Assembly (NCBI GenBank): GCA_030704615.1
Contig: JAKLZA010000295.1
Location: forward strand, 47,001-111,000
DNA length: 64,000 bases
From: Takakia lepidozioides
Taxonomy: Eukaryota; Plantae; Bryophyta
Reading direction: 5' to 3'
Position numbers and translations under genes: made by a program. The notes under the pieces are model-generated. The model worked only from the letters and a program-made list of their open reading frames with translations. It did no database searches and was not told where the DNA came from. This document shows positions 10,488 through 64,000 of the stretch, one piece after another. Every line of letters starts with the position of its first letter. Position 1 is the stretch's first letter.

Positions 10488-10495
10488 GTAATAAC

Positions 10496-32600: not shown

Positions 32601-33524
32601 AATCACAAAAGATAACGACCTGCCGGATTGGTGTTGTGTAATGACATCTATGTGCAAGTGATTGGCGGCAACGACATTCAGTATAGTTTAGGGCGGACAG
32701 TAAGTGCAGATTATTCAGATTGACTCCACAGTGATTACCGTCGCAAGCATGGAAAGAGGAAGGACTGCTTGAAAGGCAATCAGACAGACTATATGGTCTG
32801 AACAACGATGATTGACGGTATGCCGACCCTCACTCTCTCTTCAAACACATAGGTACATAAATCTCATGAGAGAATCGAATGGCGTTAACGACGCTCGCAA
32901 TTCAGTAGTTCCTGCTAAAGAAGGGAAGAGGAAGGACTCCTTGAAAGGCAATCAGACAGACTGTATGATTGGAACAACAGTGAATGACTGTGCCGATAGT
33001 CATCCACTCATTGTGCGGTAAACCCTTAGCAGAGGAGTAGAAAGCAAATCACCTTTGTGATGGTCGGTAGCGACAATCCCTGTCTGGGACATTCCACAAT
33101 TCTACGCATATCTTCAACAATGAAATGTAAGTTAGATAAAACTTATTGGCGCCTTCTTAGGTTTTGAAATTGGATCCCCTTCTGCAGCTTTCCTCTTCCC
33201 TCTCACATCTGCTGGAATTTCTGTCTGCTCTAGGGTTTCTGGACCTTCTCCCGGTTCGGCGTTCCGCGTGCTTCCACCTCCTTCAGTGTCTATGCGAATC
33301 ATCTCTGCCTCCACAGGCTGGCGCACTCTTATTGCCGACTGTGTCACAGCCGCTGTCTCAGTCTCCGTCTGCTCTTCTGAATCAGTCTCTGCGTTCACCT
33401 GCTGCCTTGGCCCTATGTTCTCCAACAAACGACGCCTCGTCATTTGCTCTCTTGCTCTACGTCTCTCTCTAAGGGAAGTAAAATAAAGAGACTTTCTTCT
33501 CTTTCGTATTGTAGAAGGAACCAT
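29650..33524 (-). CDS. Cargo gene of Mutator-like copy A: ParB-like domain protein, multi-exon, 3'-truncated before any MTase region
   Basis: RLDIPLRRMISMLVVRPPLSHDITKLESDFVHGY..FYLS..VWDGNHRLLAW (DGNHR at 31922-31936), IRWLEIWNSDQTVKDLNQFPK, EWAMIRVVYR|YTKYVLMEG; colinear with the 55959-62323 gene, with shared intron positions. Confidence 0.75.
29871..30592. repeat. Six copies of the 22-bp near-palindrome TGAATGTCGTCAACGACATTCA in intron 29729-30673
   Basis: Copies start at 29871, 29977, 30138, 30245, 30450 and 30571; weaker variants at about 32457, 32585, 32659, 32877 and 33057. Confidence 0.9.
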
Positions 33525-34303
33525 CTCCAGCTTGACTACCACTCTCTCTCTAAGCGCGAAAAGTAGAAAAACGCAGTGACTCCCGATTTCTTGCGGGATT
33601 GCCTACGTTCTTGCGTGTCTCTAGAAGCATCGGATTCCCTCTCGCCTGACCGTTACACATAGTCGTTCCCTTATTAGTGCACATGCCAGCAATTGGTGTA
33701 CAGCTGTTCGTATTCAGTTATGGATGTCTGACGTGTGTCGCCCAAAAAATAAACGGCGTGTTCTTTATTAGAACGGTTTCAATATTTTAAAAATAACAGC
33801 GAATCCCAGAAATCTTGGCGCACAGTCTTACACAAATAAATGTAAATGAACGAGAGTTTGATGACAAATCTTGGAATATCATACACGTCATCCTTGTTAG
33901 CCAAACCCCCACATTCGTTTCACATTTGGAACTTTCCAGGTGCGCATGATCATTGGTAGTAATATAAAGATACATTTACTTAATCTGCAATCCCATCCTT
34001 AGATCTTGTGGCATGCTTCCGGGAAGTCAGCTTTGTTATTGGGTTTATTGATGAGGTTATGATTAACGGTTTTAACAGCTGCCGACACTGCTCCTAGGGA
34101 TACTCTGACCACTGGGCCCACAAGAAAAGTAATTAAAATGGACGGCTGCATATCTGGAAAGAATAACATAATATGCACAGTCGTTGTCTGAGCTTCCTCC
34201 GCCATATTCTCTGCTCATTCTTCAACTGTGTTCTGGAGACATCAGTAAACCGATTTACACTAGATCTGCGATAGCAAGGTACAAACGTACGCGAGGAAGG
34301 AAG

Positions 34304-37300
34304 ATGGCTTCCTCTGAAGCGGAGTTCTTCTCTGACGACAAACCAGTGCCGTTCTCCCAGGAAGTCCTTGACAATGGATTTGCAATTGTTCTGGAACATG
34401 TCTTGGCTACCCGTTTTCAGCTGCAGAATGGCTCCATCTTTTTGGAGAAAGAGGTGTACGATCTTAAAGGGAAGTTGTTGAAATACTCTTTCCAAAACCG
34501 TGATGAGACGGCTCATATCAGCCAGTGGAGAGTGCGTCCTGGTCGATACAGAGTACTTGGAGAGCCTCGGCGAAAGTCCCTTGGGTCATATGTGACGCCC
34601 GGGACTGCTGCTTCGGTCGTTGAAGACAAGAGGGAGGTGGTGGTGAAAAAAGAACAGACGTCCTCCACTCCAATCGTTGAGCTTTCGGATTCTTCCGATG
34701 ATGACATAAGTGAAATTCCAAATCCAGTCCTTCCTACTGTGGTTGGAGAAGCTGATGAAGAAGAGATTTGTAGTGTCATTCCAAAATTGCGGGCGATGGG
34801 AGGAATGGCTGGATTCAAAAGTGAGTTGCGGGGAATTGATTGGGAATCTTTGAAGCAGGTGCCTGTGAAGTTCTTGCCGAGACTTTTGATGGCGATATCC
34901 TATTCGAGCTGCCTCCTCCTCCGCGAGTTGGAGGTGTAACAATCATGATGCATGGAATGGACAAGAAACACGACGGGCACCCGTGGTGCAGAACAAAAAC
35001 ATCCAATATTCAGAAATGATGACAAGCTTGTTTTCAGGAGGACAGTTTGCAATGGACACCTTAGGGTGTGATAATTTGAATTGCAGACACTTTCTTCAGT
35101 CTGGGTTCATAATCCTCCACCGGCAAACACTTTCGTCTGCAAATTCTGCAAACTTGTGCCATCCTGCTTGGCGCTCTGCGGAGCAAGAATGTACTATGTT
35201 GTCCACCGTTTGAAAACAATGACAAGAGCTTGTGTGCATTTCGGATTCCATAACCATCCTGTCTCGAAGGGGGATTACAGGGAGAGTGTTGAGACAGTAT
35301 CGAGGTTGATTAAACAGGAGTTCGGGAGAAACCCATCCGCAACAACATCTGCAATTGCTCTTGGCGCAAGCAAGTCCTTCTTGGAAAGCCATATTTTGAG
35401 TGAAGGGGATTCTGTGGGGACTAAACTTGACGGTGCAGCATTGGACCTGGTCATGATCATTTCTCCACTTTAAGTTCACCTAACATTCGGCATCAGATCA
35501 ATGCATTGAGAATGGGCTCTGGGATCAGAGGCTACATAGACAATATTTTGGAATTGAAACGAGTGAGCAAGTACGATTACATCCAGGACAATGTATTCCC
35601 AGGTCAAGGTGCCATCAAAGTTTTTCTTTTCAAAATGTCGACTGTTGGGGAGGGCAGTGGGGTTAGCCTCGTGAAGCGGATGCAGAAAGACTGGGGACTT
35701 GCAGAACTGTTTTCTTATGTTTGATCATGTGAAACGAGTGAAGGATTGGACGACAATGGCTTGTCATGTCTACGATCCAGTGTACCAACGAGTTATGACA
35801 ATTGCAGTTTGTGACATGCAATCCGAGGATACGGAATCCCAGAAGCTCATGTGGAATTCCCTGATACGTGTCATGGGCTGCCATGGGCTGCATCTCCAAA
35901 TTTCGCAGGTTTCATGGCGGATAGTGCTCAAGCAAATTTCAATGCTGTTCGTATTGTCTTCGGATCGGGCGACCCAAAAGTGCCATGCCAGGAAGAGAGC
36001 GTACATGTCTATTCCATTGGACACAATCTCTGGAAAAACATACAAAGTCGGACATCAAACCAGAGATGCAGACTCAGCACCGTAAATTGTGCAAAGAGTA
36101 CAAAGATGCTAGAACAATGAAGGAGGCGGACACTTTGTTCCAGACAATTCGTGCCTGGTGGTTCTCTTCTGGAGCTGCATCACTTGAGAGTATGAGAGCA
36201 TTGGAAGATTGGCTGGCGTTTTGGCACTTCCGGTATAGACAGTGGGGAGCAGCCATGCCAATGGTACGAGGCTTATATTTCTTGCTTTATTCATACATTT
36301 GCTTTCCATTTTTTGTGTCCTCGCTTTCTTTATGTTGTTTTCTGTTCACTGTTTTGAAGTGTGGTTCTCCACTTTGCAGAACATGTCCATTGAGGAAATG
36401 GCGGACATGCCATCTTGCAATTTGGCAGAAACTGTGCACAACGCATGGTTGCAGCAGTCTGGGAAACGAGGTCGGGATTTGTATGTGGCAACAACAGATG
36501 ATTTGATACGTGCCTTGCAACAACAAACCCGATACCGTGATTTCTTACGAGGTGGGGTTGGTGGCAAGGGTCCGGACAAATGGGAGTTGATGTTGCGTGC
36601 TGCAAACAGATCTGGGGATCCAATCAAGATAGCACGGGCGGTGAGCATGTATGCCCAGGGAACGCCACTTGTTTCTAGAGTTCCACATCTTGAAGGGGAG
36701 GAGAGATTCGGCTCCTGTAAGAGGAAATTGAACACTCCACCTGGTTCGGATTCAGATTCCACAGGGCACCGTGATAACTTCTCGAAGCCTCGTGTTCCCC
36801 TGCATGACAGCTCCATGTCCGGAACCTCCATTGTGGAGGAACCTCCAACACGACGGCAAGCTCCAGCATCAAACAGTGCCTGAAATGGTGCAGGAGAGAA
36901 ACAACCCCCTTGATGTGCTTGAGTCCGCATGCCCCGACCACGTTTGGCACATAGAACGCACAAGTGTAGGGTCTCGTGTGAAATGTACAGCGATCAGGGC
37001 AACTAATTTCGAGAAGTGCACTTCATCTATATCCAGAGGTGGTGCCCGAACTCCTGCTCCGACTTTCACGGGCTTGATGCGTCCATACGGTCAACCAGAA
37101 AGCCAAGAACCACAAGTTCTGGTTCTGCGCAGATGATTGTGCCAGATGTGTGCATGGAACTGTGCGTCCTTCCGTAGTGATGAAGCCATCTCCTCCAACC
37201 GTTTGGCCCGTGAAGGTGGGAACACATCTCAGCTTTCAGGAGATTGAAATGCTGGAGGAGGCAGGTTTTTCCCTTGCGAGACAACCCCAACTCCATGCAT

Positions 37301-37837
37301 GTGCTACTACTTCTGCGTCCTCCCGGGTCCCCCGGCAAATCCTGACTTGTGGCCAACCAAACGAGATGGAAAGCTCGTTCGGCGTTCCCTCCAACCGCTG
37401 AACACTTTGGCAAAGTGGAGTCCGCAAGAATGCTCCAAGCTCGTGTTGGAAGCACCACGGAAGTACCCCATCCAGGATATGGTCGGGTATTCACAATCAT
37501 CACTTCCACATCTGCTGTTCATGACAGGACCTACGACATCACGGTTTCCAATTTCCCCAATTGCACATGTCCTGATTTTGTGAATATGCTATCAACCAGT
37601 TTGGGCAAGAGAGGTAAATTCATACCCTGCAAACATTTGTATTTCATATTTTTGAAGAGGATGGTTTGCGATCCCAAACGTGACAACTTCATTCACCAGG
37701 CCACTATGAGTTTCAACGAGGTCGATACTCTTTGCAGCGGGATACAACACATGGGTAGCATGAACTATGCAATGTGGTATGTGGACGACCATGATTTGAA
37801 ATGTGTAATTCACATCAATTCGTCGGCGGTGCAATGA
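34304..37837 (+). CDS. Mutator/MULE-like DDE transposase with N-terminal zinc-binding domain and C-terminal SWIM finger (copy A), frameshifted; intron 36264-36379
   Basis: FDHVKRV (D, 35723), FMADSAQAN (D, 35920), CLFH (36006), NLAETVH (E, 36428); SWIM CTCPDF...PCKH. Confidence 0.8.
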
Positions 37838-47165: not shown

Positions 47166-49094
47166 TGGCCAGTGTGCATCAGGTGCGGTCTTGGATTGGA
47201 TCGGCGGTGCTATTGGATGTAGTAGCGGTGGGATCACGCGTGCATCGACCTCGATTGTGGTGGACCAATCTTGCACCATCAGAGCTGCTCAAGAGAGCAT
47301 ACGATTCCATTCAACGGCCATCCAATCTCACGGTTGAAGGCATTTTGGACTAAGGGAGGCAACCACAGAGAGTGCGACATGATGATCGTCCACCTCTAGC
47401 AGTGGTCAATCGAGTGGGGCAGCCACGTGCGGCCTTATCTACGCTCATGAGCTTTCCCTCGTCTCATGCTTTCCGAGACAATGGTCCTGGGTTGATTTGG
47501 GATAGTGTGCTACAACAATTGGTGGAGCACAATACGGATGAGCGAGAACGGGCAATGGGTTTTACCACGGGCACTACAGATGTGTCAGCTCTGTCAGAGT
47601 ATCACGCCGCCAAGTGTTGGGTCAAGCAATGGATTTAAATTGCTTGACATGGATAATTGGCTTGTGCATGGCTGAGCAACGGAGATTGCAAGCATTGGTG
47701 GCTACTTTTGTACTCCCATTGGATAGTGCATCCTCCCTGCCAACCGGGACGGTTGAGGCAGTGAGTAGGGGCGAGCACAGGATCATGGGTTGCAAACACC
47801 CATGGCAGATGTGGGATGAGATGCGCAAAGAGAGAGTCATTGGATCTCTCAAGCAGCAGTATGAGGAGTGGGGAGAGCCACGGACTAATGATCAGTTGGA
47901 GGCCAAGGTGGCCAAGGTTTTTGAAGAGGTTGAGAATATTTCTTGCTCAGAGGATATTCTCAAGGTGGCTATGGCGGAGCAAGTACAGACTACGCCACAG
48001 TCAGATTGGGCGGACAAGGCCTAAGAGGTTGCTATCTAGCAACCAAAGGATTCGTCTCCTACCTCCAAGTCTGGTGTACCCAAGGTTGCAGTCACTAGGG
48101 ACAATTGGGAACCAGATGTTGGACCTACAGTCACCGGAGGAGAGATGGAGGATCCAGCAATTTCAAAGGGCTTATATAAATTGTTTTGCCTTCAGTTTGA
48201 AGGATTTGGGGAATTTGAAGGGTCAGGAGATTTGTAATGATTTGGCAAGTGACACGCCAATCTTTCAAAGGCCCTACCGGTATAGTGACATGGAGAGGTC
48301 ATTGATCCAGTCACGGACTATGGGAGTTGTTCAAAGCTGGATTGGTGGAGTTGTCAGGCGGGGAGTATGCCTCTTCAACGGTGATGCCAGCTAAAAAGGA
48401 TATCTATGGCAATTGGACAGAAAGAAGGATGTGTGGGGACTATCGTCCTGTGAACCGTCAGACTAAGTCCGATAGATATGCCATGCCAACTCCAGAGGAG
48501 ATCTTTGATGCTATTGGACATACAAAGGTGTTTAGCACATTGGACTTGCGATCCGGTTACCACCAGTTGCCAATCAAAGAGGCTGACAAGCAAAAGATGG
48601 CATTCTGGGGGATTGACCAACATGGGAAGGATTGTTTGTACCAATGGCGGTTCTTACCGTTTGGGTTGAAGAATGCTCCTGCAGAGTTTCAGAGGGTCAT
48701 GGATAGGATTCTCGCGGGGCTAGACTTCGCCTGGTGCTACATTGATGACATCATTGTCTTTAGTGCTACGGTTGAGGAACATGAGAGACACCTTCATGTG
48801 GTATTTGGACGCTTGAGAGCGCACGGGTTGAAACTGCACCCCGGAAAGTGCAAGTTCTTCCACAATCAGATTGAGTATCTGGGCCACATGATATACCCTG
48901 GAGGATTGGGTGTTCAACAGACAAAGGTGGAGGCCATTGCATGCATTCCACGCCCCATGGATGTGAGCAGAGTTCGTGCTTTCATGGGATTGGCAAACTA
49001 CTATCGACGGTTTGTCAAGGGATTTAGCAGCATTGCAAAGGCTCTTACCAAGTTGACCAAGGTGGGTCAAGAGTGGCAATGGGAGGAGGAGCAG
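47166..49094 (+). mobile_element. Gypsy pol fragment with the C-terminal half of a C5 cytosine methyltransferase followed by RT
   Basis: LLDVVAVGSRVHRPRLWWTNL (motif VIII-like), ERERAMGF (IX), RQVLGQAMD (X); then RMCGDYRPVN, LDLRSGYHQ, PFGLKNAP, YIDD; cut at 49094 by the TIR element. Confidence 0.8.
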
Positions 49095-49639
49095 GGAGGT
49101 TTGCTATTTCATGAGCATGAGCGGCATGAGCGGCATGAGCGGCATGAGCGGAGTAGTAAGACAAATTTTTCATGAGCAGAAGTACAAATTTCGAAAATAA
49201 AAAACAATAAAAAACAATACTTTAATGCAAAATGTCAAGAAAAAAAATTATTATTCGGTCCCTGAAGGGAAACTTGCAGTTTTGACAGTTTGTGCTCATA
49301 TAATTTCGTTCCGCTCATGCCAATTCAGCGGACATGTGCAATATGGCGCCGAATTCGCGGAAATGGTCCGTAACCTGAAAAAACGGCAACGTATTCGCAG
49401 TAATAGGTCTCTCTGGCGAAAATTGGCCGAAATCCGGGCTATAGGTCCCCTCATGACAGGTAATTCGGCGCCATTTTTCCAGAAATGGCCCAACAACTGA
49501 TTCTGTTGGATCTCAATTTGAATGGAATATTTGCCTCATTCCAGGAGTTTTGGGGTGCATTTCATTACACTGCAAAAAAAAAATCTGATACAGCAAAATG
49601 CAATTGAAAATATCCATATGGAGGATTCCCTTTGCCCCA

Positions 49640-52600
49640 TCAATGATTTCTGGAATCCCAAAGGAGGAGTTTGTGCAGCTCGTTCACGCTCAACGCCGGT
49701 GCATGAATAAAGTCATCAATAGTCACGTTCATCCTCAACCTCTTCAGGTAAATGTAATACAGATGCTTGCACGGATAATACTTCGAACCCTTCTTTGCTT
49801 CCATCAACGACAAGTCCGTACAATTGCAAGTCGGCTCCACTCCAATCGTAATTGTGTATACATCGTCGCGTACAGCCGAGCCGGCCGTTGCCATCCGATT
49901 ACACACGCCCAAGGCCGGGTGGGGGTACGTCCACGGAAGATCTGAATAGTGCAAGCCATCCCAAGAGCATTGGCAATCCGAGTCTCATTCAACTTGTTGG
50001 GAGGGTGTCGTCTCTTCACTCTTCCGAATCGCATTGTGGGATGTGCAGAATTGTCCAATCCGTCTCTACTGGACCGAGCAGTCTGCAATGGCTGGGTCTG
50101 AGGAACCGGAAATGCGTGGCCCGGGATGTCTGTGCGTTGCACCATTCGAAATCCTGCTGCAGAAAGAGAGCATCCGCTCTCATTCTGAGAGAGGCTGCAA
50201 CCCGGTGCAACAGGCCAGATGCCCGGAGGCTCCGGCATTCCTGAATCCGTACTTGGGCTTGCCAAATACACAGGTCATTATGTCGTGCCTACAGAACCAA
50301 AATGTCTGCGTTGTGGCGTGAGCAAATGTGGGAGTCAAAACTCTGCCGCTGAAACAAGGTGCAGGTACAACACTGTGTGGGTTCCTCCGAATCATCTCAC
50401 CACAACGTGCTCTCGTATCCACCCGGATGGCGCAGTACTTCCCTTGAAATGCCGGCAATGTCCTTGCAATTCTCCACTGTGACTCCAACACTCTTGTCTC
50501 CACAATGGGAATGTTGTACTGCTTTATTACAGATGGCTCGTTATGTTGCCGGGGCACGCGCCTGTGCTCGAAGGAGATGGCGATCTTGAACGTGCAGGAC
50601 TTGCGGTGCTCGACGAGACCTCCTCGGGCAACATCACCGGACCACGAGGGAGCGTGCAAATTCTTGTCAGCTCGCCATGAATCCTCTTCTCCGCCAGGTG
50701 CCTCGTCAAGTCTTTGTCTCACTGGACGGGTATGAACATCTCCTTCCAAATGTTGGCCTCTTCGCAGCAATGGCGTGTCCCGAAGGCCCTCTCGCAAGGC
50801 CGCCGCCCCACTTCCGAGGATTCTTCGATCTAGAGGCAGTCCGCATCAGCATTTCCTGCCTGTCCGGCCCCCAAGCCCACTGTTTCCCTTTCAAGAACTC
50901 GTTGTATCTGCATTGCTGGCATAATTGACCTCACAATGTCATCCGTTGTGGCAGTGAGGATGTCCACCAGATGTGCCGCAGAGGAGGCACGCCAGGAAGA
51001 GTGCACTGATTCGGCCATGTTTGTCGTGGGCATGTCGGTGTCGGAGGTCAAGACACATTTCCTGCACAAGCACATGTTGAGGTTACAAGCAAGTTACAAA
51101 TATGGCCAAGATAATATTCAACGGGACGCGAATTCGTGCAATTCACCTCCCGCATATAGTCGCCGAACTGGAGGAAACGATAATGCGCCATGCTAGCCAA
51201 CTGACCATTGCTCCCTCGTCTGATTTCCTTACAGCACCTGACGATGTCCACCAAGCCCGTATGCATGCAAACTGTGTCTCTGCATCATCCAGGTGGGAGC
51301 GCGCTTCCACGCAAGGCACATGGAACGGTTGCTCCTCTCTGAAATCTGGCGCCACGAGCCTGGTTGTGTACTGCGAAAGGCTCTGCAGAAAATGGAACCC
51401 ACAAGATCTCTCCTTGCCTTCTATGGGAACATTGGGGTCTTGCCCGTACACCCTTCGGATGGCAGCCCAATTTGCTTGTGCGTTGTCCGCATGAAACCAC
51501 GGAAATTGGGAGGGGCAATCCCGCCTTGGCCATCTGTTCGTTTGATTCCCTGCCAAAGAAGCATCTCCAATTGTGTGTCCTCTCCTTTCATCTCACAAAT
51601 AGCAATTGTCATTAGCATCCTGCAGTGGGTGTCGTAGACATGTGCACCCATTGTCACCACTGGTGATTTATAATTCGCTTGATATGGTCGAACATGACCC
51701 AACTGTTTGACAAGTTCCCACTCGTCATCCTGTCGACCAGTTCGACGCCGCTGCCAGGTACACGTGGACATTTTGAATACGAAACAACGATCTGCCTCAG
51801 TCCCTTGTCCTGGAAACCTACTTCCATGAATATAGTCATATCCACATCGTCGCTTCACCTCCAGAATGGAGTGCATATCCGAGCCACGCCCAATTTTCTG
51901 TTTGCATGAGACAATGTGGTTTCGGACATTCGGTGATGACATACGTGGGACACAGCACCTCCATTCTTCTCGTCGAGGAGGAACTCTATCGGAAGCCGTC
52001 TTCCGAGCATAATTCTGGCCAATGCCATCTTATGGGCGGCTTGGAGCTGTATCTGTTTGGGTTTGGCACCCGGTCTCAACTTAACCTCCTCCTGAACGAG
52101 CTGCTCTGCTTCGTGGGCAGCCTCCCGCGAGTTCCCCCTCGCCAATTTGTGACAATGGGAACCAACGTGTATGCAAGCTCGGGTGAGGTCAGGGAAACGG
52201 TGCAACACATAGAACTGCTTGGCATTACAAACAGACATGCAGTGTGGTGGTTCTTTGCAATGCGCACACTTAAATGTGGAGTTCGGAACCTTCTCCTGAG
52301 CTCGAAATGGTTGGTGAGCTGTGCCTGTCCAATCGGTCTCGTTCCTGTGACCTCTGGATTTAAAGTGGAAGCAAGTTGGGGAGAAACACCGCAACGCGCC
52401 CGCACAAACAACGTAGCGCACCCGCACACCATCAAGCATCTTCATGCTGGTGGTTTTGGTAACGCACCAAGGATGACCGTCATGTTTTCTATCCATATCT
52501 GTCAACATTCCGGACGCCCTCGAGTAGTCCGCCCGAGGAGGGAACTCAAAGAAGATATTACCGTCGACGTCGGCGGGAAGGCATGTAACCGATTTAATTG

Positions 52601-53221
52601 CGAACTTGCTGTAGTCCAGCCCGGCCAGCTCCGACCGGTGTCCCTCCAGGTGAAGCCCTCGCAGAATTTCTAGAATAGATCGAACTGCGGTGCTCGTGCT
52701 GGGAATATGACTCCCTCCTCCACTGACGTCCATTGAGGACTTGCCTGATCTCCAGGACGACCTCGGAACTTCCATGACCTCGTCTGAGTCGGACAGGTTG
52801 TGAACAACCCGTTCTCGGTCGTCTTCATGGATGGGTTCGGCTCTGGATTTACTTCGTTGCGGACTTCTCTCTTTGAGGTACCCACTCTCTGATTCGCGGA
52901 TTGTTTCGTGGAAGGCGCCAGGATAGACGGTGCATTTGGCGGGCAAATGAAGTCCCCAACAGCCCTGTATATGACGCTGTCCGATGGTGGAACTCGCCAT
53001 TCCCTGCCATCGCCGAAATCATCGTGGAGCACAACAATACTCTCGACAACAAGGCCGTTTGAGTCCTTCCTTTCCTCCTCCAAAAAAACCGACCCCGGTT
53101 TCAGGTGGTATCGAACGCACAGATATTTCTCCATCACCCGGCAGGTGTCCCCTCTGCACGGAAATGAAGCTCTATGCTCGTGAGGAGGGCAGTACACTGT
53201 AGCGCTCGGGTTTTCCGCCAT
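49640..53221 (-). CDS. Mutator/MULE-like DDE transposase with SWIM finger (copy B), frameshifted; intron 51062-51146
   Basis: MDRKHDGHPW, RACIHVGSHCH, MFDHIKRI, ADNAQAN, CGFH, TTNMAESVH, CNCTD..YPCKH; colinear with copy A, same intron position. Confidence 0.8.
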
Positions 53222-53520
53222 GGGAGATGTGCACACAAGACTGCCAGGATGGCGTGCGGGGAAGCTCCCTGGTAGAAGGGGGTGCAGCGATGGGAATGAA
53301 TGCGATGCCGATTTGTCCGAGCGACGAAGCCTGATCCAAATCCAGGGAGCCAACTATCTCAAAAATCCACAGTCAGAGTGTTAATGAACCTTGTCTCCGG
53401 AATGCGGCCCCTCGTCTTTGCGCAATAACTGCCAACGGTATGCAGTCAGAAAGTGGGGGGCCGTCCGGATGATGACGGCTGAAGGGGATAAGCCGGCACC
53501 GTGCCGTCACATTACTACCC

Positions 53521-55720
53521 CCGAATGGAAATTCGGCACCAACATCCAACAGAGGAAGCCCGGATGAAGTCGCCTCGGGCGCAGAGGCCGGAGTGTGTGC
53601 GACAGATAACATCCTGGATGGAGATTCGGCGCCGAATTTCCATCCGGTCCCCCAAAGGGAGTCGTGTCGGGGGGTCAGGCCGAAAACTGGACGGCATAAA
53701 AACATCCCCAGATGGAAAAACGGCGCCGAATTTCCATCCGGGGCGATTCGGATGCAGTCGGGGAGGGGGGAGTGGCCTGCAGTTGGCTGTCACATTTCAA
53801 CCCCCGGACGGAAATTCGGCAACGAATATCGAACAGGGGACGCCCGGATGAAGTCGCCTGGGGCACAGAGGCCGGCCAGTGTGCGACAGAGAACATCCCC
53901 TGGACGGCCATTCGGCGCCGAATTTCCATCCGGGCCCCCCCAAAGGAAGTGTTGTCGGGTGTCAGAGCGAAAACTGGCCGACATAAAAACCTCCACAGAT
54001 GAGAAAACGGCGCCGAATTTCAATTCGGGGCCGTTCCAATGAAGTCGGGGAGGGGGAGAGGTCGGAACCTGGCAGTCATATTTTCAACCCCCGGGACGGA
54101 AATTCGGCACCGAATATCCAAATCTCCGACAGAGACCATCCCCCGGATGGAGATTCGGCGCCGAATTTCCATCCAGCAGGTAAGTGGAATCTCGGATGGA
54201 TGGAGATAGAAACAGCAGGTAAGTCCGGGGCCCACAGCCCCAGCAGGTAAAATCGGCGCCGAATTTCCATACGGCGAATTTCCATCCAGCAGGTAAGAAT
54301 ATGGATATTCGGCGCCGAATTTCCATCCTGCAGCCGTGAAAATCGAAAAGGGCTGCACAGGCCCCGAATTTCGCCAATATTAATTGCCCCGGTTAGCAGG
54401 TAAGTCGGATCGGTGCCGGCGCCGAATTTCGCCGGGATGAATGGAAATTCGGCGCCGAATTTCCATTAAAATCGGCGCCGAATTTCCAACCCGGCGCCGA
54501 ATTTCCATTAAAACGGCGCCGAATTTCCATCCTGCAGGTAATTCGAATCCGGCGCCGAATTTCCATCCAGCAGGTAAGTCGGATCGATATGGATATTCGG
54601 CGCCGAATTTCCATCCTGCAGCGAATCGTGGATGAATGGAAATTCGGCGCCGAATTTCCATCCAGCAGGTAAGTCGGATCATATGGATATTTTCCATCCT
54701 GCCCCGTTTCCATCCAGCCGAACTTCGTGCAGCCAACCTGTGCCAGTCCCCCTGGAGCCCAGGAATTACCTTCGTGCAGGTAATATACCCTTTGTGCAGG
54801 TAATTTCCAGATGACAATTACCTTCCTGCAGGTAATTCCAATCGATGTTTATTCCTCGTCCAGAATTACCTGCACAAAGGTAATTCTCATCTGGAAATTA
54901 CCTGCATGAAGGTAATTCTTGTATGTGAATTACCTGCACGAAGGTAATTCTTATATGGGAATTACCTGCACGGAGGTAATTCCTCGCTCAGAAATAAATG
55001 GCGAATCGAAATTCGGCGCCGAATATCCATATGGCACCGATCCGACTTACCTGCAGGATGGAAATTCGGCGGCCGAAAATGGAAAAAATTTACCTGCCTA
55101 ATGGAAATTCGGCGCCGGATTTCCAATCCGGATGGAAATTCGGCGCCGGATTTCCATATCCGGCCTGCGATGAAGCGCGGATGGAAATTCGGCGCCCAAT
55201 TTACCATCAATTTTACCTGCTTGAAGGAAATTTGGCGCAAATGGAAATTTCCATTCCGGCGCGGATGGAAATTCGGCGCCGGATTTCCATCCGCGCGCAT
55301 CCGAATTACCTGCTTGAAGGAAATTTGGCGCACCGCCCTAATGGAAATTCGGCGCCGGATTTCCATATTTTGGAAATTCTTTCCATCCGCGCGGAATTAC
55401 CTGCTTGAAGGAAATTTGGCGCACCGCGCGCGATGGAAATTCGGCGCCGGATCCCTTTGTTGCGCTGCGGATGGAAATTCGGCGCCGGATTCCATCCATC
55501 CGGCGCAAAGCTTTTTACCTGCGCCGATTTCCATTCCGGCGCGGATGGAAATTCGGCGCCGGATTTCCCGCGCGCATCCGAATTACCTGCTTGAAGGAAA
55601 TTTTTTTTTGCGCGGATGGAAATTCGGCGCCGGATTTCCATCCGCGCGCGAATTACCTGCTTGAAGGAAATTTTACCTGCGCGGATGGAAATTCGGCGCC
55701 GGATTTCCATCCGCGCGCTT
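53521..55720. repeat. Intergenic array of about 30 GGAAATTCGGCGCCGAATTTCC palindromes/variants plus AATTACCT-N6-AGGTAATT motifs
   Basis: Seen directly; ~96-bp spacing within ~290-bp units at 53520-54100; motif orientation flips at ~54850. Confidence 0.92.
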
Positions 55721-55958
55721 CCGAATTACCTCGTGAGGGAAATTCCGGGACTGTTTTCGTCTATTTTCTTCCGACATGGAGGGCTTCATCCGACATTTAA
55801 TTGCGCAGTTGGGCAATAAATGTCGACGGCCGTCGTTATTATTCGGGCTGGCGACGCATGGCTTCCTGGACACGTACCCTAAATCTCATGCTATACTTGG
55901 CTTAACATGGTATTCCAGGCATGTACCCCAAAAAAGGAGATCTTTTTGGCTGGGACTT

Positions 55959-58900
55959 ATGCCGCCTGAAGGGCGTGGCTCTCCTGAGAGAGACCTCAGA
56001 TCCAGACCGCGGCGGGTTGAAAGCTCTGTACTACGGACGACGGCCAATCTCTCGCATGGCCAAACTGAAGCTCCAGCAGGAGATTCCAGTGTCTTGCTCA
56101 CAACCTGCGCCAACTGAAGCCGAGTACTCTCAGGCAAGCCACTTCTGCTTTCGGTTTGTTCGATTTCTTTTTTTGCTTTCGCTTCGTTACCTCGCTTTGT
56201 TTTGCATCTTCATCCTGGCTTTGCTTTATGAGTGAACTTTAGATAGTTGACTGAACCTTAGATTGTTTGCAATGCGTGTGCAAATCCGGCAGCTCTGGAG
56301 AAGGCTGCTTGTGCATGTCATTCTTAGGCAATGGTTGCATTTGTTTTCATTGTTGTTGCATGGCTCTCCATACTTCCTAAACTTGTTATGTTTTCATTTT
56401 TGCTACATGATTGCTGCTATGGTGGTTGCGCTGCTGCTTTTTGCACCATGTTGGTTTCACGATTTTTGTCAATCACAGAGTGACGACGAGCCCGGCACGC
56501 TGGTGGTATCATCGACAGCTCCAACTCATCGCATGTTTGAATCGCCCAACTTGGGGCGAGAGGGCAAACTTAAATCTTTTGTTGGTGGACGGGAGGACTT
56601 GCAACGAGATTACGATAGAGTAGGCATTGGGGAGGTTGGTGCAGGCGGCATGGCAGGTGAAGGGCGTGAGGACATGAGGACAGCAGATCCGGCAATGGAG
56701 GTTGTTCATGCACATGCAGTAGGGCCCGCCCACGCAAAGAAAAAGAAGAAAGCTAAGCACATGCAATCCCCGGCGAGAGAGCAGTCACGGGCTGCGGAGG
56801 GGGGAGTGAGCAGTGCGCGCGAGGGTGTCAGTTCGCCTCAATCAAAGGTGGTCGTCCTGGAGGGCTCCCCTGTTGCTAGCCCTAGTAAGAAAGAAAAAGC
56901 CCGTGAGAGGGCAAAAGAGAGGGCAAAAGAACAGACGAGACAGAATGCTAGCAAGGAGGAAAGACAAAAGGCAGCTGAAGAGGCCAGGGGTGCCCAAATG
57001 ACAGATGCCAATGTAAGCGAGGGACACACAGAGACGGTGGATCCCTACAAGACACCACAGAGAGGCAGTAGCACACCGGTTAGACCATCGCGGGCAAGTG
57101 CAGCCCCCGCAATTACCCATACGGTGGAGAGTGGAGGAGAGGAAAGAACACCTGAAAGAGCACGATTGTGCAAGTTCGAGGTGAAGCCAGGGAGAGGGCA
57201 GTAGAGACGACGAGAGTGCTGGAGGTGGTTTCGCAGGTGGCTGACCCTGTTGAGGAGGACGACATGGAGTTTCTGACCAGGATGACATTCTCCCGGACAT
57301 CCCCAGGCCCCAAACCCGGAGCATACAGGCTGGATTTGGCGGTCTTGGTGGGCTGCCGGAAAACCCCTCTGCAGCAGACGTCATGTCTGAGGCGGATATG
57401 AAGTTGGCCGCTGCCAAGATGTTGGAGGCAACCCACAGCAACATTGGCAGGGTGCTGGGGGGCATGGTGTACCCGGCCAAGCTTCGAATTCCCCTTTGCC
57501 GCTTGGTGTCATTGCAGGTGGTGAGACCTGCCCTCCCAGGCGATATCGACAAGCTGAAATTCTCTTTCCGGGATGGATATCGAATGGGGTCTGCCGCCTT
57601 TTACGTTTCCATTGAGAACGACCACGGAGCTTCCCGTGCCCACACTTCCGATGAGGTGGACAAATGGGGTCCCCATTGGCAAACGCGAAATGAGGAGTTC
57701 GAGAGATCGATTGCTAGTGATCCTCTTTTCCAGCACATGTCCGGTAAGATGTTCTACGTGTGGGACGGCAATCATCGCCTCCTGGCATGGATGGAGCACA
57801 TTGCCCAAGCCCACCCCAACGATCTCGATTGGCATTTCGCCGTCGATTGTGTTGTGCTGAAGGTTGCGGGGCCCAAAGATCGCAGTCTTCTCAAAGCTGC
57901 AATGGCCGACATCAACTCGTAAGCTACAACCCCTCTCGCTTTTGGACTTTGAATTTGGAAGTCATTTCATTGCGAATCCTCATATATGATGAAAATTCCC
58001 ATTTCAGTATTGTTTGATGGAAATGTGGCACTGCAGGGTGACTGAGAATGCCTTCATTGCCACCAACTTGTCCCATATGCTCTTCCGAGTGAAGGATGTC
58101 GGGAAGCAGGGGGTGCAAAGAGTTTGCCAATTCCCTCAGTGCCGACCTCCTGCGCAAGTCGGAGGCAAAGGCAGACAGAACCTGGTATAGGCTGAGCGTC
58201 GACGCCATGGTGGACTACATATTTCGGGTAAAGCTCCTGCAGTTTTGTTGAGCTAATTTGTCTCTCCTCCCCCAATAGAAGAAATTGTGTTGAGCAGGAT
58301 CTCTAATCTTATGTGCGCTTTTCGACAGACGAAAATACAGCAGGATTTGGCACATGCGCGGAGGTTCTACATGGAGTCAGAGGAGAAGAATCCAACCCTC
58401 CCGGAACTCGAATCGTATGTCAAAGCTGCGGAGGTGAGGGCCCGCATAAAGTACAAGTCGCGGATGGTAAAGTACGTGGCCATAGCTGATCCCGCCCTTG
58501 GTGCCGACTTTCTGGTGGAGGTGGGAAGCACTACTCTCGCGCTCTGAAGCCCACGATGACATTGGAGAAGCTCCATCGTCTAGCCACATCCTGTGTGGAT
58601 GCAACAGAAAAGGTGATACATTCTTAACCAAATTGTGGTGGCAACAACTCCTTTTTGTGGTGTTTGGCGCTTACGAATATGCTGGGTGGTTGGACAGACC
58701 CGGTGGCTCCAAATCTGGAATGGTTCCCAAAGTACCAGGGACATGTGGAGCTTCCCCAAACCGGACAAACTCTCTGACCCCACATTCGACATGTGGATGA
58801 ACCGCATGACATGGTGGGTTTCAGGTACTTCCCCACGCTTCGTTTGGGGCTTCTACTCTAGTAGGGGGTGGATTCATTGTATTTTTTGAGGAAAGCGATC

Positions 58901-61900
58901 TGATGGACAATCTCCACAGGTGACGACGAATGCGCAAGAGCAGCTGGACACACAAGCACATCAGTTCAAGATGGAGATATCTCCTGCAGCAGAGAGCCTA
59001 CGTGACTATGTGACGAGGTACTTTCTGCTCTACAAAACCAACCTATTCTTTCGGGAGATAGCAGATGCTCGCCGGAGCCACGAGTTCACCGACCAGCCGA
59101 ACGCGGACAAAGCAGCAATGCGCCTTCTGTACAGGTACATACGCGCTGCCTTTCTTTTCAAGTCCTGGCATTTCAGGATGTTAGAGGCCTAAGTGGTGTT
59201 AGGGAAAATGGCGCCGAATTTCCAGTCAGGGCTCCGAAAATGGCAAAGTCCCTAGACTGGCTGGCCCGGAACTGGAAATTCGGCGCCATTTTCCAGTTCC
59301 AGGCCCTATTGCCGTTCAGGGACTTAGCCATTTTCGGGCTAAGTCCCTAGTGTGGCTGGCCCGGAACTGGAAATTCGGCGCCGTTTTTCCAGTTCTAGGC
59401 CCTATTGCCGTCCAGGGACTTAGCCATTTTCGGGCTAAGTCCCTAGACTGGCTGGCCCTGAAGTGGAAATTCGGCGCCATTTCCAGTTCCAGGCCCTATT
59501 GCCGTCCAGGGACTTAGCCATTTTCTAAGTCCCTAGGGTGGCTGGCCAACTGGAAATTCGGCGCCCCAGTTCTAGGCCCTATTGCCGTCCAGGGACTTAG
59601 CCATAAGTCCCTAGACTGGCTGGCCCTGAAGTGGAAATTCGGCGCCATTTCCAGTTCCAGGCCTATTGCCGTCCAGGGACTTAGCCATTTTCGGCTAAGT
59701 CCCTAGGGTGGCTGGCCCGGAACTGGAAATTCGGCGCCGTTTCCAGTTCTAGGCCCTATTGCCGTCAGGGACTTAGCCATTAAGTCCCTAGGGTGGCTGT
59801 GGAAATTCGGCGCCGTTTTCCAGTTCCAGGCCTATTGCCGTCCAGGGACTTAGCCATTTTCGGGCTAAGTCCCTAACTGGGTGGCCCTGAAGTGGAAATT
59901 CGGCGCCATATTCCAGTTGTAGGCCCTATTGCCGTTCAGGTTAGCCATTTCGGACCTCATTGGGTTTTTCATGAATGCAGGTACTGTAAGTTCTCCTTTT
60001 GGAGAAAGGTCATCTGTCTTTCGAGCCACCATTCTTCCTGGCATGGAGGAACCCTGGGGCTGACTCCATGTACACTGACGATATTGTGAAGGAGTGGCAT
60101 CTGGAACATTTGCGTGATTGCCCTTGGTATGTGGACCTTCCGCCCGGCTCGCTCGACCCCGAGTTTCAATTGAAGCTGGATGCTGAATTCCGACGAAACC
60201 GGGCTCCGCTGCCTCCGTTGGGTGCAAAAGAGGCAAAAGCGCTTGCGAACTCCAGGAAAGCGGCAGAGCTTGCTCAGGCAGGAATTCAGAGAAATTGCAT
60301 GAGAAGAGTAAAGGTCAAAGGAAAAGGACAAGGAAACAGGTGACTGCAGTAACACCCAAAAAGAAGAAAACCATCGGGGCATCGGAGGAGGCGCAGGAGG
60401 GGACCCAAGAGAGTGACTCCGACGCCGATTTTGTTCAAGGTCCTGCGACTGCTGTTGCTCCTACCCAGTCACCGGTCGTCCGGGTTCCCAAGTCAGTTCG
60501 GAGTGGGACTGGCTCTGCCAAGAAGTTGGCATTTGAGGGCGAGCCTACACGGCGGTATTCGGCGGTGACGTTTACGCACAGGCCAAAGCTAGAACCTCCA
60601 ACCATCATCCAATGCGTCAATGAGAGCTTCCTTGACGCTCTCGCTGCCAGGGCGAAGAAGGTGGCACACAACAAGTCTCTGGCGGAGCAGAAGGGAAAAG
60701 CCAAGAAGAGGGCTGCCGGTACAGAGCCTAAAGACACCCCTGGTTTTGAAGCCATGATGGAATTCTTCACGGCTGTGAGCACGAATTGCAAGAGCACTCG
60801 GGGGGGGTTGAGGTGGAGAGAGCTTGCGACATGATTCTCCTCGACATTCCAGATGGGGAGCTGCTGGAGGGCCTGGATGGTGTGCCACCTGGAACAGGTT
60901 TACTGAGGACTACTGGAAAGCCGGGTTTGGGCTGGCGGGGATGCTTCTGGATGACGGTGGATGTGTGGTTGTCCTTGCCACGAGAGGGAAGACCACAGAG
61001 AATGCGGTGGCAAGGTGGACACCGAAAAGTGTCACCCCGGTCCTCCTCAGAAAATGGTTCTGCATCAGTACGCAGGGGTTGCGAACAGAGGGCCAAAGTG
61101 TAAGTTATCAATCTATTGCATTCACTTCATATTGTGGTGTATGTTAAGTAGACCCTGGAATTGATCCATTCTTTGTTGGATGTGCAGACATTGGTGTTTG
61201 AGGCATATTGCTTTGTGAAGAGAGGGTCTACGTTCAAATTCCGCAACGACGGTCGTCTTGTTGATGCGCTGTGGACCCTGTAACCTACGATGTCCTCTAC
61301 AACTATGTGCCCCACTCTAGTATGCCGAAGGACACAAAGACAGGCAAACCGTGGCGGTACAGCCGGACCCGAAGCCCTGCTTTCATCCAAACCCTCATGG
61401 AGACGTGCTCGGATGTCCAAGGGCGGATTCTGGACCTCACATGCGGCACGGGTAAGCCTTCACGTGCTCAGTTTGTCCCCTGGCCCCATTGCAATTGCAT
61501 GCCGCAAGCTATTAACCGCCCGCTTTGTTCCTCAGGTGCTTCAATGTGGGCAGGGACGTTGTCCGACAGGCATGTGTTCGCCTTCGAGCCAGATACTGCC
61601 CTCCACAACTCGGAACTTGCAGCGGCTGAACGTCTGCCGAAAGAGGAAGAGGCATCCTCGGAGGATGAGGAAAAATCCGAGAAGGAGCAGGGGGAGGAAG
61701 TTGGGATCGAGGCCGAGGAGCCCCCGGTTTACGAGTGAGTGGTGGCATTGTAAGTTGCCTCCAGATTTTGTGAGGCACCTCCCTCCGCTCTCTTATTTCA
61801 TTGAAAACCCTTTCTGGTTGTGCTGGTATTGACATTCTTCAAGTGGATTTGTTCTTACTGTAGGATGCCAAGTACTGCCGGAGGGACGTCTACACCGGAG

Positions 61901-62323
61901 TTCATGGGCAGGAGGAACGTGCCTTTTTTTGCCAGGGGAGATTTCATGCCTAGTCCAGAAAGGGAGTACATCCTGCCTACTTATGCTGCCCGGCTTGCTT
62001 CGGTGTCCATTAGGAGGTGTTCCGAACGTAGTCGTGTACAGCAGATTTTAGACGAGGCAAGCCTCAAGAAAATGAAGATGAGGGAGGAGGCAGCAGCTAT
62101 TAGAGCCCGTCGGGCTCGTAGATTTGTGTTGGATTCTGCTGAGGAAAGTGGGGGAGAAGACGCAGAAGATTCCCAGGAGGTGAGGTGGACAGTCCCCCAA
62201 GGAGAGGACGGGATTTTTGAGAGGCATAGTGGAACTGATGCATCACAGAGCTCGGAGGATGAGGGGGATGAGGGGGATGAGGAAGAAGGTGGGGCAAGTT
62301 CCTCGGAGGGTGTAGGAGAGTAG
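55959..62323 (+). CDS. Cargo gene of copy B: low-complexity N-terminus, ParB/Srx-like domain, uncharacterised middle region, beta-class N4C/N6A DNA-methyltransferase-like domain, acidic tail. Approximate exons: 55959-56133, 56479-57918, 58037-58227, 58329-58824, 58920-59134, 59981-61099, 61189-61451, 61536-61734, 61864-62323
   Basis: LRIPLCRL..VVRP..IDKLKFSFRDGY..FYVWDGNHRLLAW; CDMILLDIPDG (60843); LLDDGGCVVV; RSPAFIQTLMETCSDVQGRILDLTCGT|GASMWAGTLSDRHVFAFEPD. Start codon and terminal exons uncertain. Confidence 0.72.
59203..59950. repeat. About eight tandem ~90-bp hairpin units centred on GGAAATTCGGCGCC, in intron 59135-59980
   Basis: Unit aagtccctag..ggaactggaaattcggcgccatttccagttcc..agggacttag; cores at about 59275, 59369, 59465, 59552, 59634, 59726, 59801 and 59895. 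Confidence 0.92.
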
Positions 62324-62679
62324 TGCCCATTCCGGCTATGACAGTTAGAACACACTTGTATAGACGTGGCTTGCCACAAAATTTGCAATAAAATGTTGCA
62401 TTTTAAGTCCACTGGTGCCACATTCCAACTTCACATGACCCTATTTCCGTGCCTCCTAACCCTATTTCCGTGGACTCACAATGGTCTGCTCATGCTTTTT
62501 TTTTTTTCCGCTCATGCTCATGCCGCTCATGCTCATGCCGCTCATGAAATAGCAGCCCCCCATTCACCCATTCGGGCCTTTTGGTGACATGTTCCACAAA
62601 ACCAAAACAGTAGACCAGTTAGCTATAGAATAAAATCCACATGGAAATGAAAAACATTCAAAGCAGAGTTTTGTGTGGG

Positions 62680-63289: not shown

Positions 63290-63376
63290 CTGGAAAACAC
63301 ACCCAAAATAACAATTTCATGAAGGTTACAGTTCAGCAGACACACAGCAGGTACACAGTAGTTTTGATGCCTCAAC

Positions 63377-64000
63377 CAACCTTGTGTTGACGCAAGGTTG
63401 ATTGAGCCATCAAAACTTGCAGCCCAAACTAGCAATGAATACAAAGAATTGGTCTATTCTGAGCAAGAATCAACCTTGCGTCAACGCAAGGTTGAACAGT
63501 GCGTACAAGCATAACTTCCCTATAGAGATGAAATCAAACGTAAATCAACCTTGCGTTAACACAAGGTTGATATGAGTCCGGAAAAAGATCATTCAAAAAC
63601 AAATTTTAAAACCAAGAAACGATATCTTGTGTGCATGAAACAACCTTGCGTTGACGCAAGGTTGAAAATCCCTTACAAGAAGATCTGAAGGAAACAAATG
63701 AAAGCAAACGGAAATTGACCTTGAGATGATGCAAGGTTGATTTGGGTCTGGAAAAGTACGCACGTATTGCAGAATTCGAAGCCTACGCAAAATGTACTCC
63801 GGTTTTCAATCAACCTTGAGTCAACGCAAGGTTGATTACTGATTACAGAAAAAACTCAAAAATACAGTTGCATACAACCGGCACTCAACCTTGCGTCAAC
63901 GCAAGGTTGGGACATGCCTGCAAAAGAAGCATACCACACAAAGAAAAAAGGAAATAAAATACACAATGCTGAGCCTGAATCAACCTTGCGTTGACGCAAG
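63377..64000. repeat. Array of the 24-bp near-palindrome CAACCTTGCGTTGACGCAAGGTTG in the copy C intron
   Basis: Copies at 63377, 63471, 63546, 63641, ~63716 (degenerate), 63811, 63886 and 63981; runs off the window edge. Confidence 0.92.

Follow-up and report, generated by a model that had tools for sequence, protein, structure and literature searches.

A useful precedent for transposons that carry their own arrays of recognition sites is the VANC/VANDAL system of Arabidopsis, which by analogy is the closest working counterpart of the arrangement described here. There, the VANC21 motifs are repeated in tandem, both within introns (of VANC21 and VANB21) and upstream of VANA21 (PMC5735166). VANDAL repeats are gained and lost fast, and the protein and its motif have been proposed to co-evolve (PMC5735166). 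Closest in kind, again by analogy, is the red-algal PAG3, a ParB-like N-terminal domain fused to a 2-oxoglutarate (2OG) oxygenase, with adjacent tandem inverted repeats, in Plavaka/Mutator transposons; the authors of that study suggest that PAG3 binds to the element carrying it and modifies this element (bioRxiv 10.1101/2025.02.11.637652). Here, we analyzed a stretch of 64,000 nt from the moss Takakia lepidozioides (contig JAKLZA010000295.1), hereafter the window. It is eukaryotic DNA that consists almost wholly of transposable elements, and it contains a two-gene DNA transposon in three copies (A, B and C). In copies A and B, a transposase gene and a second gene, the cargo gene, diverge from a shared central region. 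A homologous intron of the cargo gene is mostly filled, in each of the three copies, by a repeat with its own palindrome (22-24 bp). With roughly even confidence, we propose that these palindromes may be binding sites, acting in cis, for a dimeric and sequence-specific protein that the element itself encodes, most likely the cargo protein.

An intron at the same codon in three cargo genes, spliced in a sister of copy B

A preliminary description of the window had placed a phase-2 intron at a Y-R|Y position in all three cargo genes. This placement was borne out by the intron borders, which can be read in the sequence (for copy C, by the acceptor):

29729-30673, minus strand: intron of copy A, VVYR|YTKY, phase 2, GT..AG
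59135-59980, plus strand: intron of copy B, LLYR|YCKF, phase 2, GT..AG
63290..64000, minus strand: intron of copy C, acceptor at 63290, |YIYH, donor beyond the window end

The junctions read GTT GTG TAC AG|GTGCAA...TTTCAG|G TAC ACG AAA TAT in copy A and CTG TAC AG|GTACAT...TGCAG|G TAC TGT AAG TTC in copy B, and the acceptor of copy C reads CAG|G TAC ATC TAC CAT. In all three copies the phase-2 site lies at the same codon, between the second and the third base of the arginine in Y-R|Y, and the residues that follow the junction can be aligned (YTKYVLMEGNA in A, YCKFS(L)LEKGHL in B, and YIYHVLIPGKYL in C).

Splicing was checked with contigs from four public runs of the same organism, which were aligned to positions 56800-62400 of the window. 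None of the listed runs has an RNA record, and the RNA nature of X8 and X11 is a guess that is supported by the GT..AG joints in their contigs. A contig of X8 (1179 nt, 98% identical to the window, and representing a sister copy) joins 59134|59981, that is, the copy B intron is removed exactly. The aligner placed 11 extra letters in this contig, which are the first 15 bases of the downstream exon with TGT>TGC (synonymous) and one extra C; this C restores the frame that is broken in the window copy B (YCKFSLLEKGHLSFEPPFFLAW). Because the contig is spliced and in frame, an expressed, intact sister copy exists, and the copy B intron is real and spliced. A second X8 contig shows three more exact GT..AG removals (61100-61187, 61451-61534 and ~61750-61863), and a contig of X11 resolves a fifth intron of copy B, at 58825-58919. 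The sequence CAGGTAC at both borders had suggested a recent "introner" insertion, which was ruled out by the presence of the same phase-2 intron in the moss Ceratodon and in several metagenome lineages.

All three cargo-gene copies in the window are damaged. The cargo gene of copy A has a stop 21 codons past the intron, and copy B has 1-bp deletions or frameshifts at ~57269, 59996, 60288, 60884, 61266 and elsewhere, in comparison with all DNA and RNA-like contigs of the other runs. In the low-coverage DNA runs the element is present at high depth and is thus multi-copy. Altogether, copy B is a decayed member of an expressed, high-copy family.

Each intron hosts a different palindrome array

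Motif counts were compared with shuffled sequence, for which the chance expectation was at most 0.01 for the palindromes of A, B and C. The preliminary description had reported a different palindrome array in each of the three introns, and all three were indeed found far above the shuffled expectation, with 53 matches for the motif of B and 12 each for those of A and C. The arrays, to which no strand is assigned, are the following:

29871..30592: intron array of copy A, 6 copies of TGAATGTCGTCAACGACATTCA in three higher-order units of ~270 bp
32458..33081: second array of copy A, sharing the core (GGCGKYAACGAC) but more degenerate, and located ahead of the ParB exon in either the 5' region or the first intron
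53527..55708: upstream arrays of copy B, between the divergent transposase and cargo genes, GGAAATTCGGCGCC(GAATTTCC) plus GAATTACCTGC..GAAGGTAATTC
59210..59950: intron array of copy B, ~8 units of ~96 bp, each with TGGAAATTCGGCGCC and GGGACTTAGCC-N7-GGCTAAGTCCC
within 63290..64000: intron array of copy C, at least 8 copies of CAACCTTGCGTYRACGCAAGGTTG with an alternating spacing of 94/75 bp

The copy B motif, GGAAATTCGGCGCC, has 53 matches at no more than one mismatch in the window, compared with an expectation of 0.01. Nine of them are in the B intron (59210-59907), one is near 49459, and the remainder lie at 53527-55708. In the B intron the motif has the form of an imperfect, shortened palindrome (CTGGAAATTCGGCGCC-ATTTCCAG), and GGGACTTAGCC-N7-GGCTAAGTCCC is a second palindrome within the ~96-bp tandem unit. 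This second palindrome is confined to the B intron array (59319-59873), just as GAATTACCTGC..GAAGGTAATTC is confined to the B upstream arrays (54534-55660), and both are without the CG-N4-CG frame described below. In DNA contigs from other runs, 520 or 616 nt of the B intron array are missing, which indicates that the number of units varies between copies.

For copy A, six palindrome sites were found at 29871-30592, plus a weak site at 32659. For copy C, six sites (with no more than three mismatches) are present at 63377-63909, with degenerate or cut copies at 63717 and 63979, and the asymmetric centre flips its orientation between adjacent copies (GTTGAC / GTCAAC). The variants of the copy C palindrome at 63377, 63546, 63717 and 63811 differ mostly at the two CpGs (CG>TG, CG>CA, CG>AG). 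These changes look like deamination of methylated CpG and fit methylated, decaying copies.

The sequences of the three palindromes differ, and they share a common frame of a 6-8 nt arm, CG, four bases, CG, and the mirrored arm. The respective cores are CGTCAACG in A, CGGCGCCG in B and CGTTGACG in C. Both A and B have a second array with the same motif 2-4 kb from the intron array and within the same element, the motif being absent elsewhere in the window. In A, five matches to the core GKCGKYAACGMC lie in the intron and four more at 32463-32892, upstream of the ParB exon, with none in the rest of the 64 kb (expected 0.04). In B, the two arrays are located at 53.5-55.7 kb and at 59.2-59.95 kb. 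Homologous arrays of other elements carry other motifs. The arrays do fill the introns of A, B and C as described, with the corrections that the motifs of A and B also occur outside the intron and that the B motif is imperfect within it.

In A and C, the palindromes are retained while the spacers drift

Conservation was compared between aligned higher-order units, namely three of ~270 bp in copy A and four of ~170 bp in copy C. In copy A, the palindrome columns are 97% identical between units, compared with 59% elsewhere (Fisher 4e-21), and in copy C they are 85% identical, compared with 48% for the spacers (Fisher 6e-28). The spacers of A and C have drifted nearly to randomness, while the palindromes were kept. 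In a neutral minisatellite, all positions of the unit should diverge alike, and this is contradicted in A and C, whereas the B array is compatible with it. Thus, the preliminary proposal of protein-site pairs in place of neutral minisatellites is strengthened for two of the copies, but gains nothing from the uniform array of B. Together with the use of one motif in two arrays and the mirrored arm changes of the relatives described below, this is the pattern expected of sites for a dimeric, element-specific protein, and the preliminary interpretation is partly supported. The terminal repeats of copy B carry a motif unlike the palindromes, and the palindromes are therefore not end sites of the transposase.

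Introns and arrays among the relatives

The ParB-like exon of the cargo gene has 39 relatives at 36-51% identity in 90% clusters, and a profile search with this exon found 1175 cluster representatives at E <=1e-3. The named family members are from the moss Ceratodon purpureus and the liverwort Riccia sorocarpa (47 gene models). The family survey comprised 90 relative loci, denoted by L and a number. The donor exon is poorly conserved: tblastn mostly returned no match, a pattern scan recovered it in L007, L016, L055 and, less surely, L022, and the exon of L003 was recognized by eye. The states of the intron site were as follows:

Short, array-free intron at the same phase-2 site: L003 (Ceratodon, 94 nt), L007 (104 nt), L016 (101 nt) and probably L055 (95 nt)
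Acceptor ..AG|G TAY at the intron site: L022, L026, L059, L067, L086
Intron absent (continuous RLIYRYW / AVMRYFF): L001, L002, L004, L005, L006

The intron is old and usually ~100 nt long, and only in the A/B/C lineage is it filled with arrays and longer than 800 nt. The "conserved location" of the arrays, as the preliminary description had it, is thus real within this lineage, but does not extend to the relatives with an array-free intron of 94-104 nt or with none. In the relatives, other palindromes were found, at other places:

L005/L006: GTGTCTCGGATCCGAGACAC, 6-7 copies, in a different intron
L007: GGAGTTTCGGCGCAGAAACTCC, at least 9 copies, upstream of the ParB exon
L008, L017: ACCCTCTCGG(AT/AG)CCGAGAGGGT, flanking the exon on one side or on both
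L022-25: CAACTTTTGGC..CAAAAGTTG type, on both sides
Riccia sorocarpa: 21-bp palindromes, TTCCGGCGAGCCTCGCCGGAA; TGCCGGCGG-N3-CCGCCGGCA

The use of one motif in two arrays recurs in L017 and in L022, a copy that is full of stops and has its downstream array at 12478-12733. The palindrome of the L022 type (TG-N4-CA) looks like a fully decayed CG-N4-CG site. The intron of L005 and L006 that contains the GTGTCTCGGATCCGAGACAC array also harbors an unrelated tandem repeat of ~74 bp (L005:12588-13133, L006:12325-12870). By inspection, the copies with long intact open reading frames (ORFs), L005/6, L007 and L090, have arrays, and many of the array-free loci are visibly decayed.

Comparison of the palindromes across the relatives shows that the inner core and the CG-N4-CG frame are kept, while the outer arms change together on both sides:

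L005/6: GTGTCT-CGGATCCG-AGACAC (outside the clade of the four loci below, same core)
L008: ACCCTCT-CGGATCCG-AGAGGGT
L017: ACCCTCT-CGGAGCCG-AGAGGGT
L019: AAGGTCT-CGGTTCCG-AGACCTA
L027: GAGGCCT-CGGATCCG-AGGCCTC

In the ParB-exon tree, L008, L017, L019 and L027 form one clade with a support of 98/98. The pairing of copy B with L007, both of which have the core TTCGGCGC, is weakly supported (46/86), and copy A sits on a very long branch; copy C, which has no ParB exon in the window, is not included.

The palindromes of Riccia are located directly upstream of an intronless cargo gene, or, where the cargo gene is spliced, just past the first exon that was mapped, presumably within intron 1. A mirrored variant also exists in this species, TGCCAGCGG..CCGCTGGCA versus TGCCGGCGG..CCGCCGGCA. 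Both 21-bp variants occur in the same loci in separate arrays (L088:3559-4266, 8834-9201 and 17913-18386; L089:5348-5998, 10183-10846 and 15917-17097), with TGCCAGCGG..CCGCTGGCA toward both outer parts and TGCCGGCGG..CCGCCGGCA beside or just within the start of the cargo gene. The two site classes could mean two binders.

The cargo protein and the transposase

The exons of the cargo gene that were located in the window are:

57383..57922, plus strand: copy B exon encoding the ParB/Srx-fold domain, with the motif VWDGNHRLLAW
58920..59134, plus strand: copy B exon directly 5' of the array intron, an ORF; the X11 joint is 58824|58920
59981..61099, plus strand: long copy B exon 3' of the array intron, with a conserved CPWYVDL block, a linker rich in K and E, and the first part of the methyltransferase-like domain (DIPD)
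61188..62323, plus strand: copy B 3' exons (61188-61450, 61535-61749, 61864-62323), with the S-adenosylmethionine (SAM) motif I ILDLTCGTG and GT..AG joints
31849..32295, minus strand: copy A ParB-like exon, 42% identical to copy B over 80 residues
62824..63289, minus strand: copy C exon 3' of the intron, |YIYHVLIPGKYL...CGWYLDLP, 34% identical to copy B over 115 residues

The AlphaFold2 (AF2) model of the exon 57383-57922 had a predicted local distance difference test (pLDDT) score of 87.7. Its N-terminal domain matched that of Caulobacter ParB (7bm8_A) with a Z score of 9.0 and a root-mean-square deviation (rmsd) of 2.5 over 97 residues, and the top 28 structural matches were all ParB, Noc, KorB, PadC, Srx or SbnI. 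As modeled, the N-terminal domain of the cargo protein has a ParB/Srx fold. Its DGxHR-type motif, VWDGNHRLLAW, is nearly invariant (alignment A1). At the sequence level, no match of this domain to ParB was found in Pfam, and a profile search of the PDB gave only a chance match to a ribosomal protein; annotations as ParB_N, DUF6551 or DndB are present on language-model neighbors only. Pfam searches with single exons and with the long Riccia proteins returned no family beyond weak matches to PF01555 and SWIM.

The C-terminal part contains the SAM motif I (VLDLTAGTG / ILDLTCGTG), and PF01555 matches only there, with E values of 1e-5 to 4e-5 and 24-26 bits, compared with a cut-off of 26.7; one Riccia paralogue is recorded with PF01555. 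The catalytic motif IV, (D/N/S)PP(Y/F/W), is replaced by D[IVM]P[DETF] across the family, for example by DIPD in B, DVPE in L005, DMPT in the protein P0222 and DVPF in P0122. Retention of motif I together with replacement of motif IV was seen in the window at 60786-60884, in L005:13687-15150, in P0222 and in P0122. The C-terminus thus appears methyltransferase-like in sequence, and amino-methyltransferase activity is doubtful because the catalytic motif is replaced.

The transposase ends in a SWIM-like CxC..CxH finger, for which the Pfam SWIM matches stayed under the cut-off (E 0.002 for A, E 0.018 for B). Its language-model (Atlas) neighbors are MULE/SWIM clusters, at 0.85-0.92, MULE denoting Mutator-like elements. 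No match to Pfam MULE was found for the transposases, including the intact ORFs of 1189-1229 residues. For the intact transposase ORFs L005:3945-7514 and L006:3898-7587, both on the minus strand, no Pfam match appeared even at E 5. Judged from sequence profiles, a great distance separates this transposase lineage from the MULE models, and its assignment as "Mutator-like" is plausible and unproven.

Layout of the elements and their neighbors

The outlines of the three copies, with the parts other than the cargo gene, are:

~29650-37840: copy A
34184..37837, plus strand: copy A transposase gene remnants, divergent from the cargo gene
~49102-62554: copy B, ending in inverted repeats TGCTATTTCATGA(GCATGAGCG)n
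49102..49180: copy B left terminal inverted repeat, TGCTATTTCATGA(GCATGAGCG)n, without the palindrome motif
49640..53353, minus strand: copy B transposase gene remnants, 35-50% protein homology to copy A, with a SWIM-like C-terminus
62485..62554: copy B right terminal inverted repeat
~62560 to the window end: copy C, the edge of an element only, cut by the end of copy B and the end of the window

Copies A and B have a protein-level identity of 35-50%, on the transposase side and the cargo side alike. A target-site duplication (9 bp expected of a MULE) was looked for at the ends of copy B, and none was clear. The elements are nested, the left end of copy B adjoining an ORF of a Gypsy-type retroelement and its right end adjoining copy C. 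That ORF, at 48327-49100, and a second one, at 38494-40674, encode reverse transcriptase/RNase H.

A proposed binder and the alternatives

The predicted binder of the palindromes is the cargo protein, which would combine the ParB/Srx-fold N-terminal domain with a helical middle part and a C-terminus resembling beta-class amino-methyltransferases. Its sites would multiply only where the coding sequence stays unbroken, that is, in the intergenic region of the divergent genes and in the introns of the cargo gene. In the A/B/C lineage, the old ~100-nt intron would have become a site host and grown to more than 800 nt. The arrays would expand and contract by tandem duplication, with the spacers drifting and the palindrome being retained, and specificity would shift via mirrored changes of the outer arms around CG-N4-CG. 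With private sites at high density, the protein might then locate the copies that belong to its lineage and, for example, mark them, protect them from silencing or regulate them. Protein binding, the identity of the binder and the consequences of binding are all what we infer here.

In a more elaborate form, which we advance tentatively and regard as rather improbable, the system would be a eukaryotic, transposon-borne counterpart of ParB-parS. Dimers of a ParB-fold/methyltransferase-like fusion protein, made from a spliced gene, would load onto palindromes private to the lineage in the promoter region and the introns of its own element, and would then chemically mark or shield that element by DNA modification at the CpG-framed core or by anti-silencing, with the mirrored arms making sister lineages mutually "invisible".

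Several observations weigh against binding by the cargo protein. The support comes from sequences and models, and binding is a prediction. Differential conservation was also looked for in the B intron array, and none was found, the eight units being ~90% alike throughout; this array is a young, homogeneous tandem amplification that includes a half-site of the element, like an ordinary minisatellite. Most of the relatives have a short and array-free intron or no intron at this site, with arrays upstream or in another intron. Detectable arrays (within 4.5 kb of the ParB exon) are present in only 6-8 of the 32 distinct loci of at least 5 kb; hence, most of the longer relatives lack them, an outcome that the preliminary description had itself counted against its proposal. 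As for the protein, the model of the Riccia paralogue P0143 (570 residues), which is confident over residues 100-410, aligns with the ParB N-terminal domain plus the DNA-binding domain over ~180 residues, at an rmsd of 6.5-7 and with a Z score that is not higher; a helix-turn-helix after the ParB domain is possible in this model, and not established. Because all three copies in the window are damaged, a present-day function of these particular arrays is doubtful. Finally, MULE transposases can be sequence-specific regulators of their cognate copies (bioRxiv 10.64898/2026.08.24.746577).

The last point leads to the alternative that survives best, which we nevertheless consider unlikely, namely that the palindromes bind the Mutator-like transposase, acting as a sequence-specific regulator of the bidirectional promoter and of an intronic enhancer of its own element. 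The arrays are located between the divergent transposase and cargo genes, the AtMu1 transposase has been reported to activate cognate copies sequence-specifically (bioRxiv 10.64898/2026.08.24.746577), and the constraint on the palindromes and their privacy to the element would fit transposase binding equally well. However, the terminal repeats of copy B, where the transposase must bind, have the unrelated motif, and all of the arrays seen are next to the cargo gene or within it. In addition, inverted-repeat arrays of red algae go with a ParB-like accessory gene in another transposon superfamily. For these three reasons, the cargo protein is favored over the transposase as the candidate binder.

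It is quite improbable that the arrays are neutral minisatellites, which would arise easily in the non-coding DNA of transposons and have palindromy and specificity as by-products of duplication. Such an origin would suit the homogeneous ~96-bp repeat of B with its copy number varying between genomic copies, the many relatives without arrays, and an intron that is normally ~100 nt long. However, neutrality leaves three observations unexplained: the conservation of palindromes over spacers (97% vs 59% and 85% vs 48%), the presence of the same motif in two arrays kilobases apart, and the recurrence, in two bryophyte classes and many diverged lineages, of palindromes built on CG-N4-CG.

An action of the arrays as RNA, with hairpins of the excised intron giving rise to small RNAs or regulating how the cargo transcript is spliced or retained, is very unlikely. 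The arrays do lie in a transcribed, spliced intron, and each palindrome can form a stem of 9-11 bp, but such stems are short, the same motifs also fill upstream intergenic regions, and the flipping centre in copy C (GTTGAC / GTCAAC) is easier to reconcile with a DNA site, which is symmetric, than with an RNA signal, which has an orientation. Least probable of all, and only barely credible, are targets of a host factor, such as a silencing or boundary protein that depends on methyl-CpG. The two CpGs of the frame are fixed, and the decay of the C palindromes is concentrated at them (CG>TG/CA), as expected of methylated sites, but a host factor would need no different arm sequence in each element lineage.

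If the cargo protein does bind the palindromes, these bryophyte transposons would represent a second, independently evolved VANC strategy of own-copy recognition that arose from a bacterial-type ParB domain. They would also show how introns of transposon genes become a storage for cis elements, and would connect land plants with the ParB-like accessory genes of red algae. The putative natural protein-site pairs (A, B, C, L005/L008/L017/L019/L027 and the Riccia variants), which differ by few mirrored bases, would make up a ready series for the study of shifts in DNA-binding specificity. If, on the other hand, the arrays are only decaying repeats, they still show the "conserved intron location" to be an expansion, within one lineage, of an ordinary intron of ~100 nt.

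Comparison with known systems

The described systems share different parts of this arrangement. VANDAL21 and VANDAL6 are Mutator-like elements with an accessory gene (PMC5735166, PMC10398659), as the element analyzed here plausibly is. In both cases, short family-specific motifs are tandemly amplified in non-coding DNA, including introns of the accessory gene and the region upstream of the transposase gene, and the repeat number changes quickly between copies; the motif arrays of the window agree with the description of those of VANC/VANDAL (PMC5735166). Because VANC/VANDAL shows it, co-evolution of protein and motif is an established principle for Mutator-like elements. However, the VANC motifs are 8-9 bp long and have one orientation, whereas the sites found here are palindromes of 20-24 bp. 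The accessory protein is also different, with a predicted ParB/Srx-fold N-terminal domain, a methyltransferase-like C-terminus and no Pfam family, so that the two proteins are likened by description only. Moreover, the hosts of VANDAL are eudicots, while the hosts here are bryophyte-like.

With PAG3 the element shares a ParB-like accessory gene on a giant DNA transposon beside arrays of tandem inverted repeats. As the PAG3 arrays occur in non-MULE transposons, arrays of this kind seem to be tied to the ParB-like gene rather than to the transposase. In the red algae, the ParB-like domain is fused to the 2OG oxygenase and an N6-methylase is encoded separately by PAG2, whereas here the ParB-like and methylase-like parts are joined in one spliced gene. 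Compared by description, the two also differ in their hosts and, for the most part, in transposase superfamily, and in the present element the arrays are also found within introns.

Bacterial ParB-type sites are palindromic, 13-24 bp long and often clustered. ParB-parS, KorB-OB and Noc-NBS resemble the present case in the ParB-fold N-terminal domain with a DGxHR-type motif and in the palindromic sites, but there is no sequence-level match to any solved ParB, and the setting here is a eukaryotic nuclear transposon. The beta-class N6A/N4C methyltransferases (PF01555), including those of phage and plasmid ParB-methylase loci (PMC4738411), likewise have motif IV followed by motif I, the SAM motif; here, the score remains just under the Pfam cut-off and the catalytic motif is replaced. 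Full-text literature searches found no description of this bryophyte family, which is not proof of absence. In comparison with these known systems, the new features are the ParB-fold/methyltransferase-like accessory protein as predicted here, the palindromic sites of 20-24 bp with a CpG frame, the bryophyte hosts, and the direct evidence of constraint on the sites.

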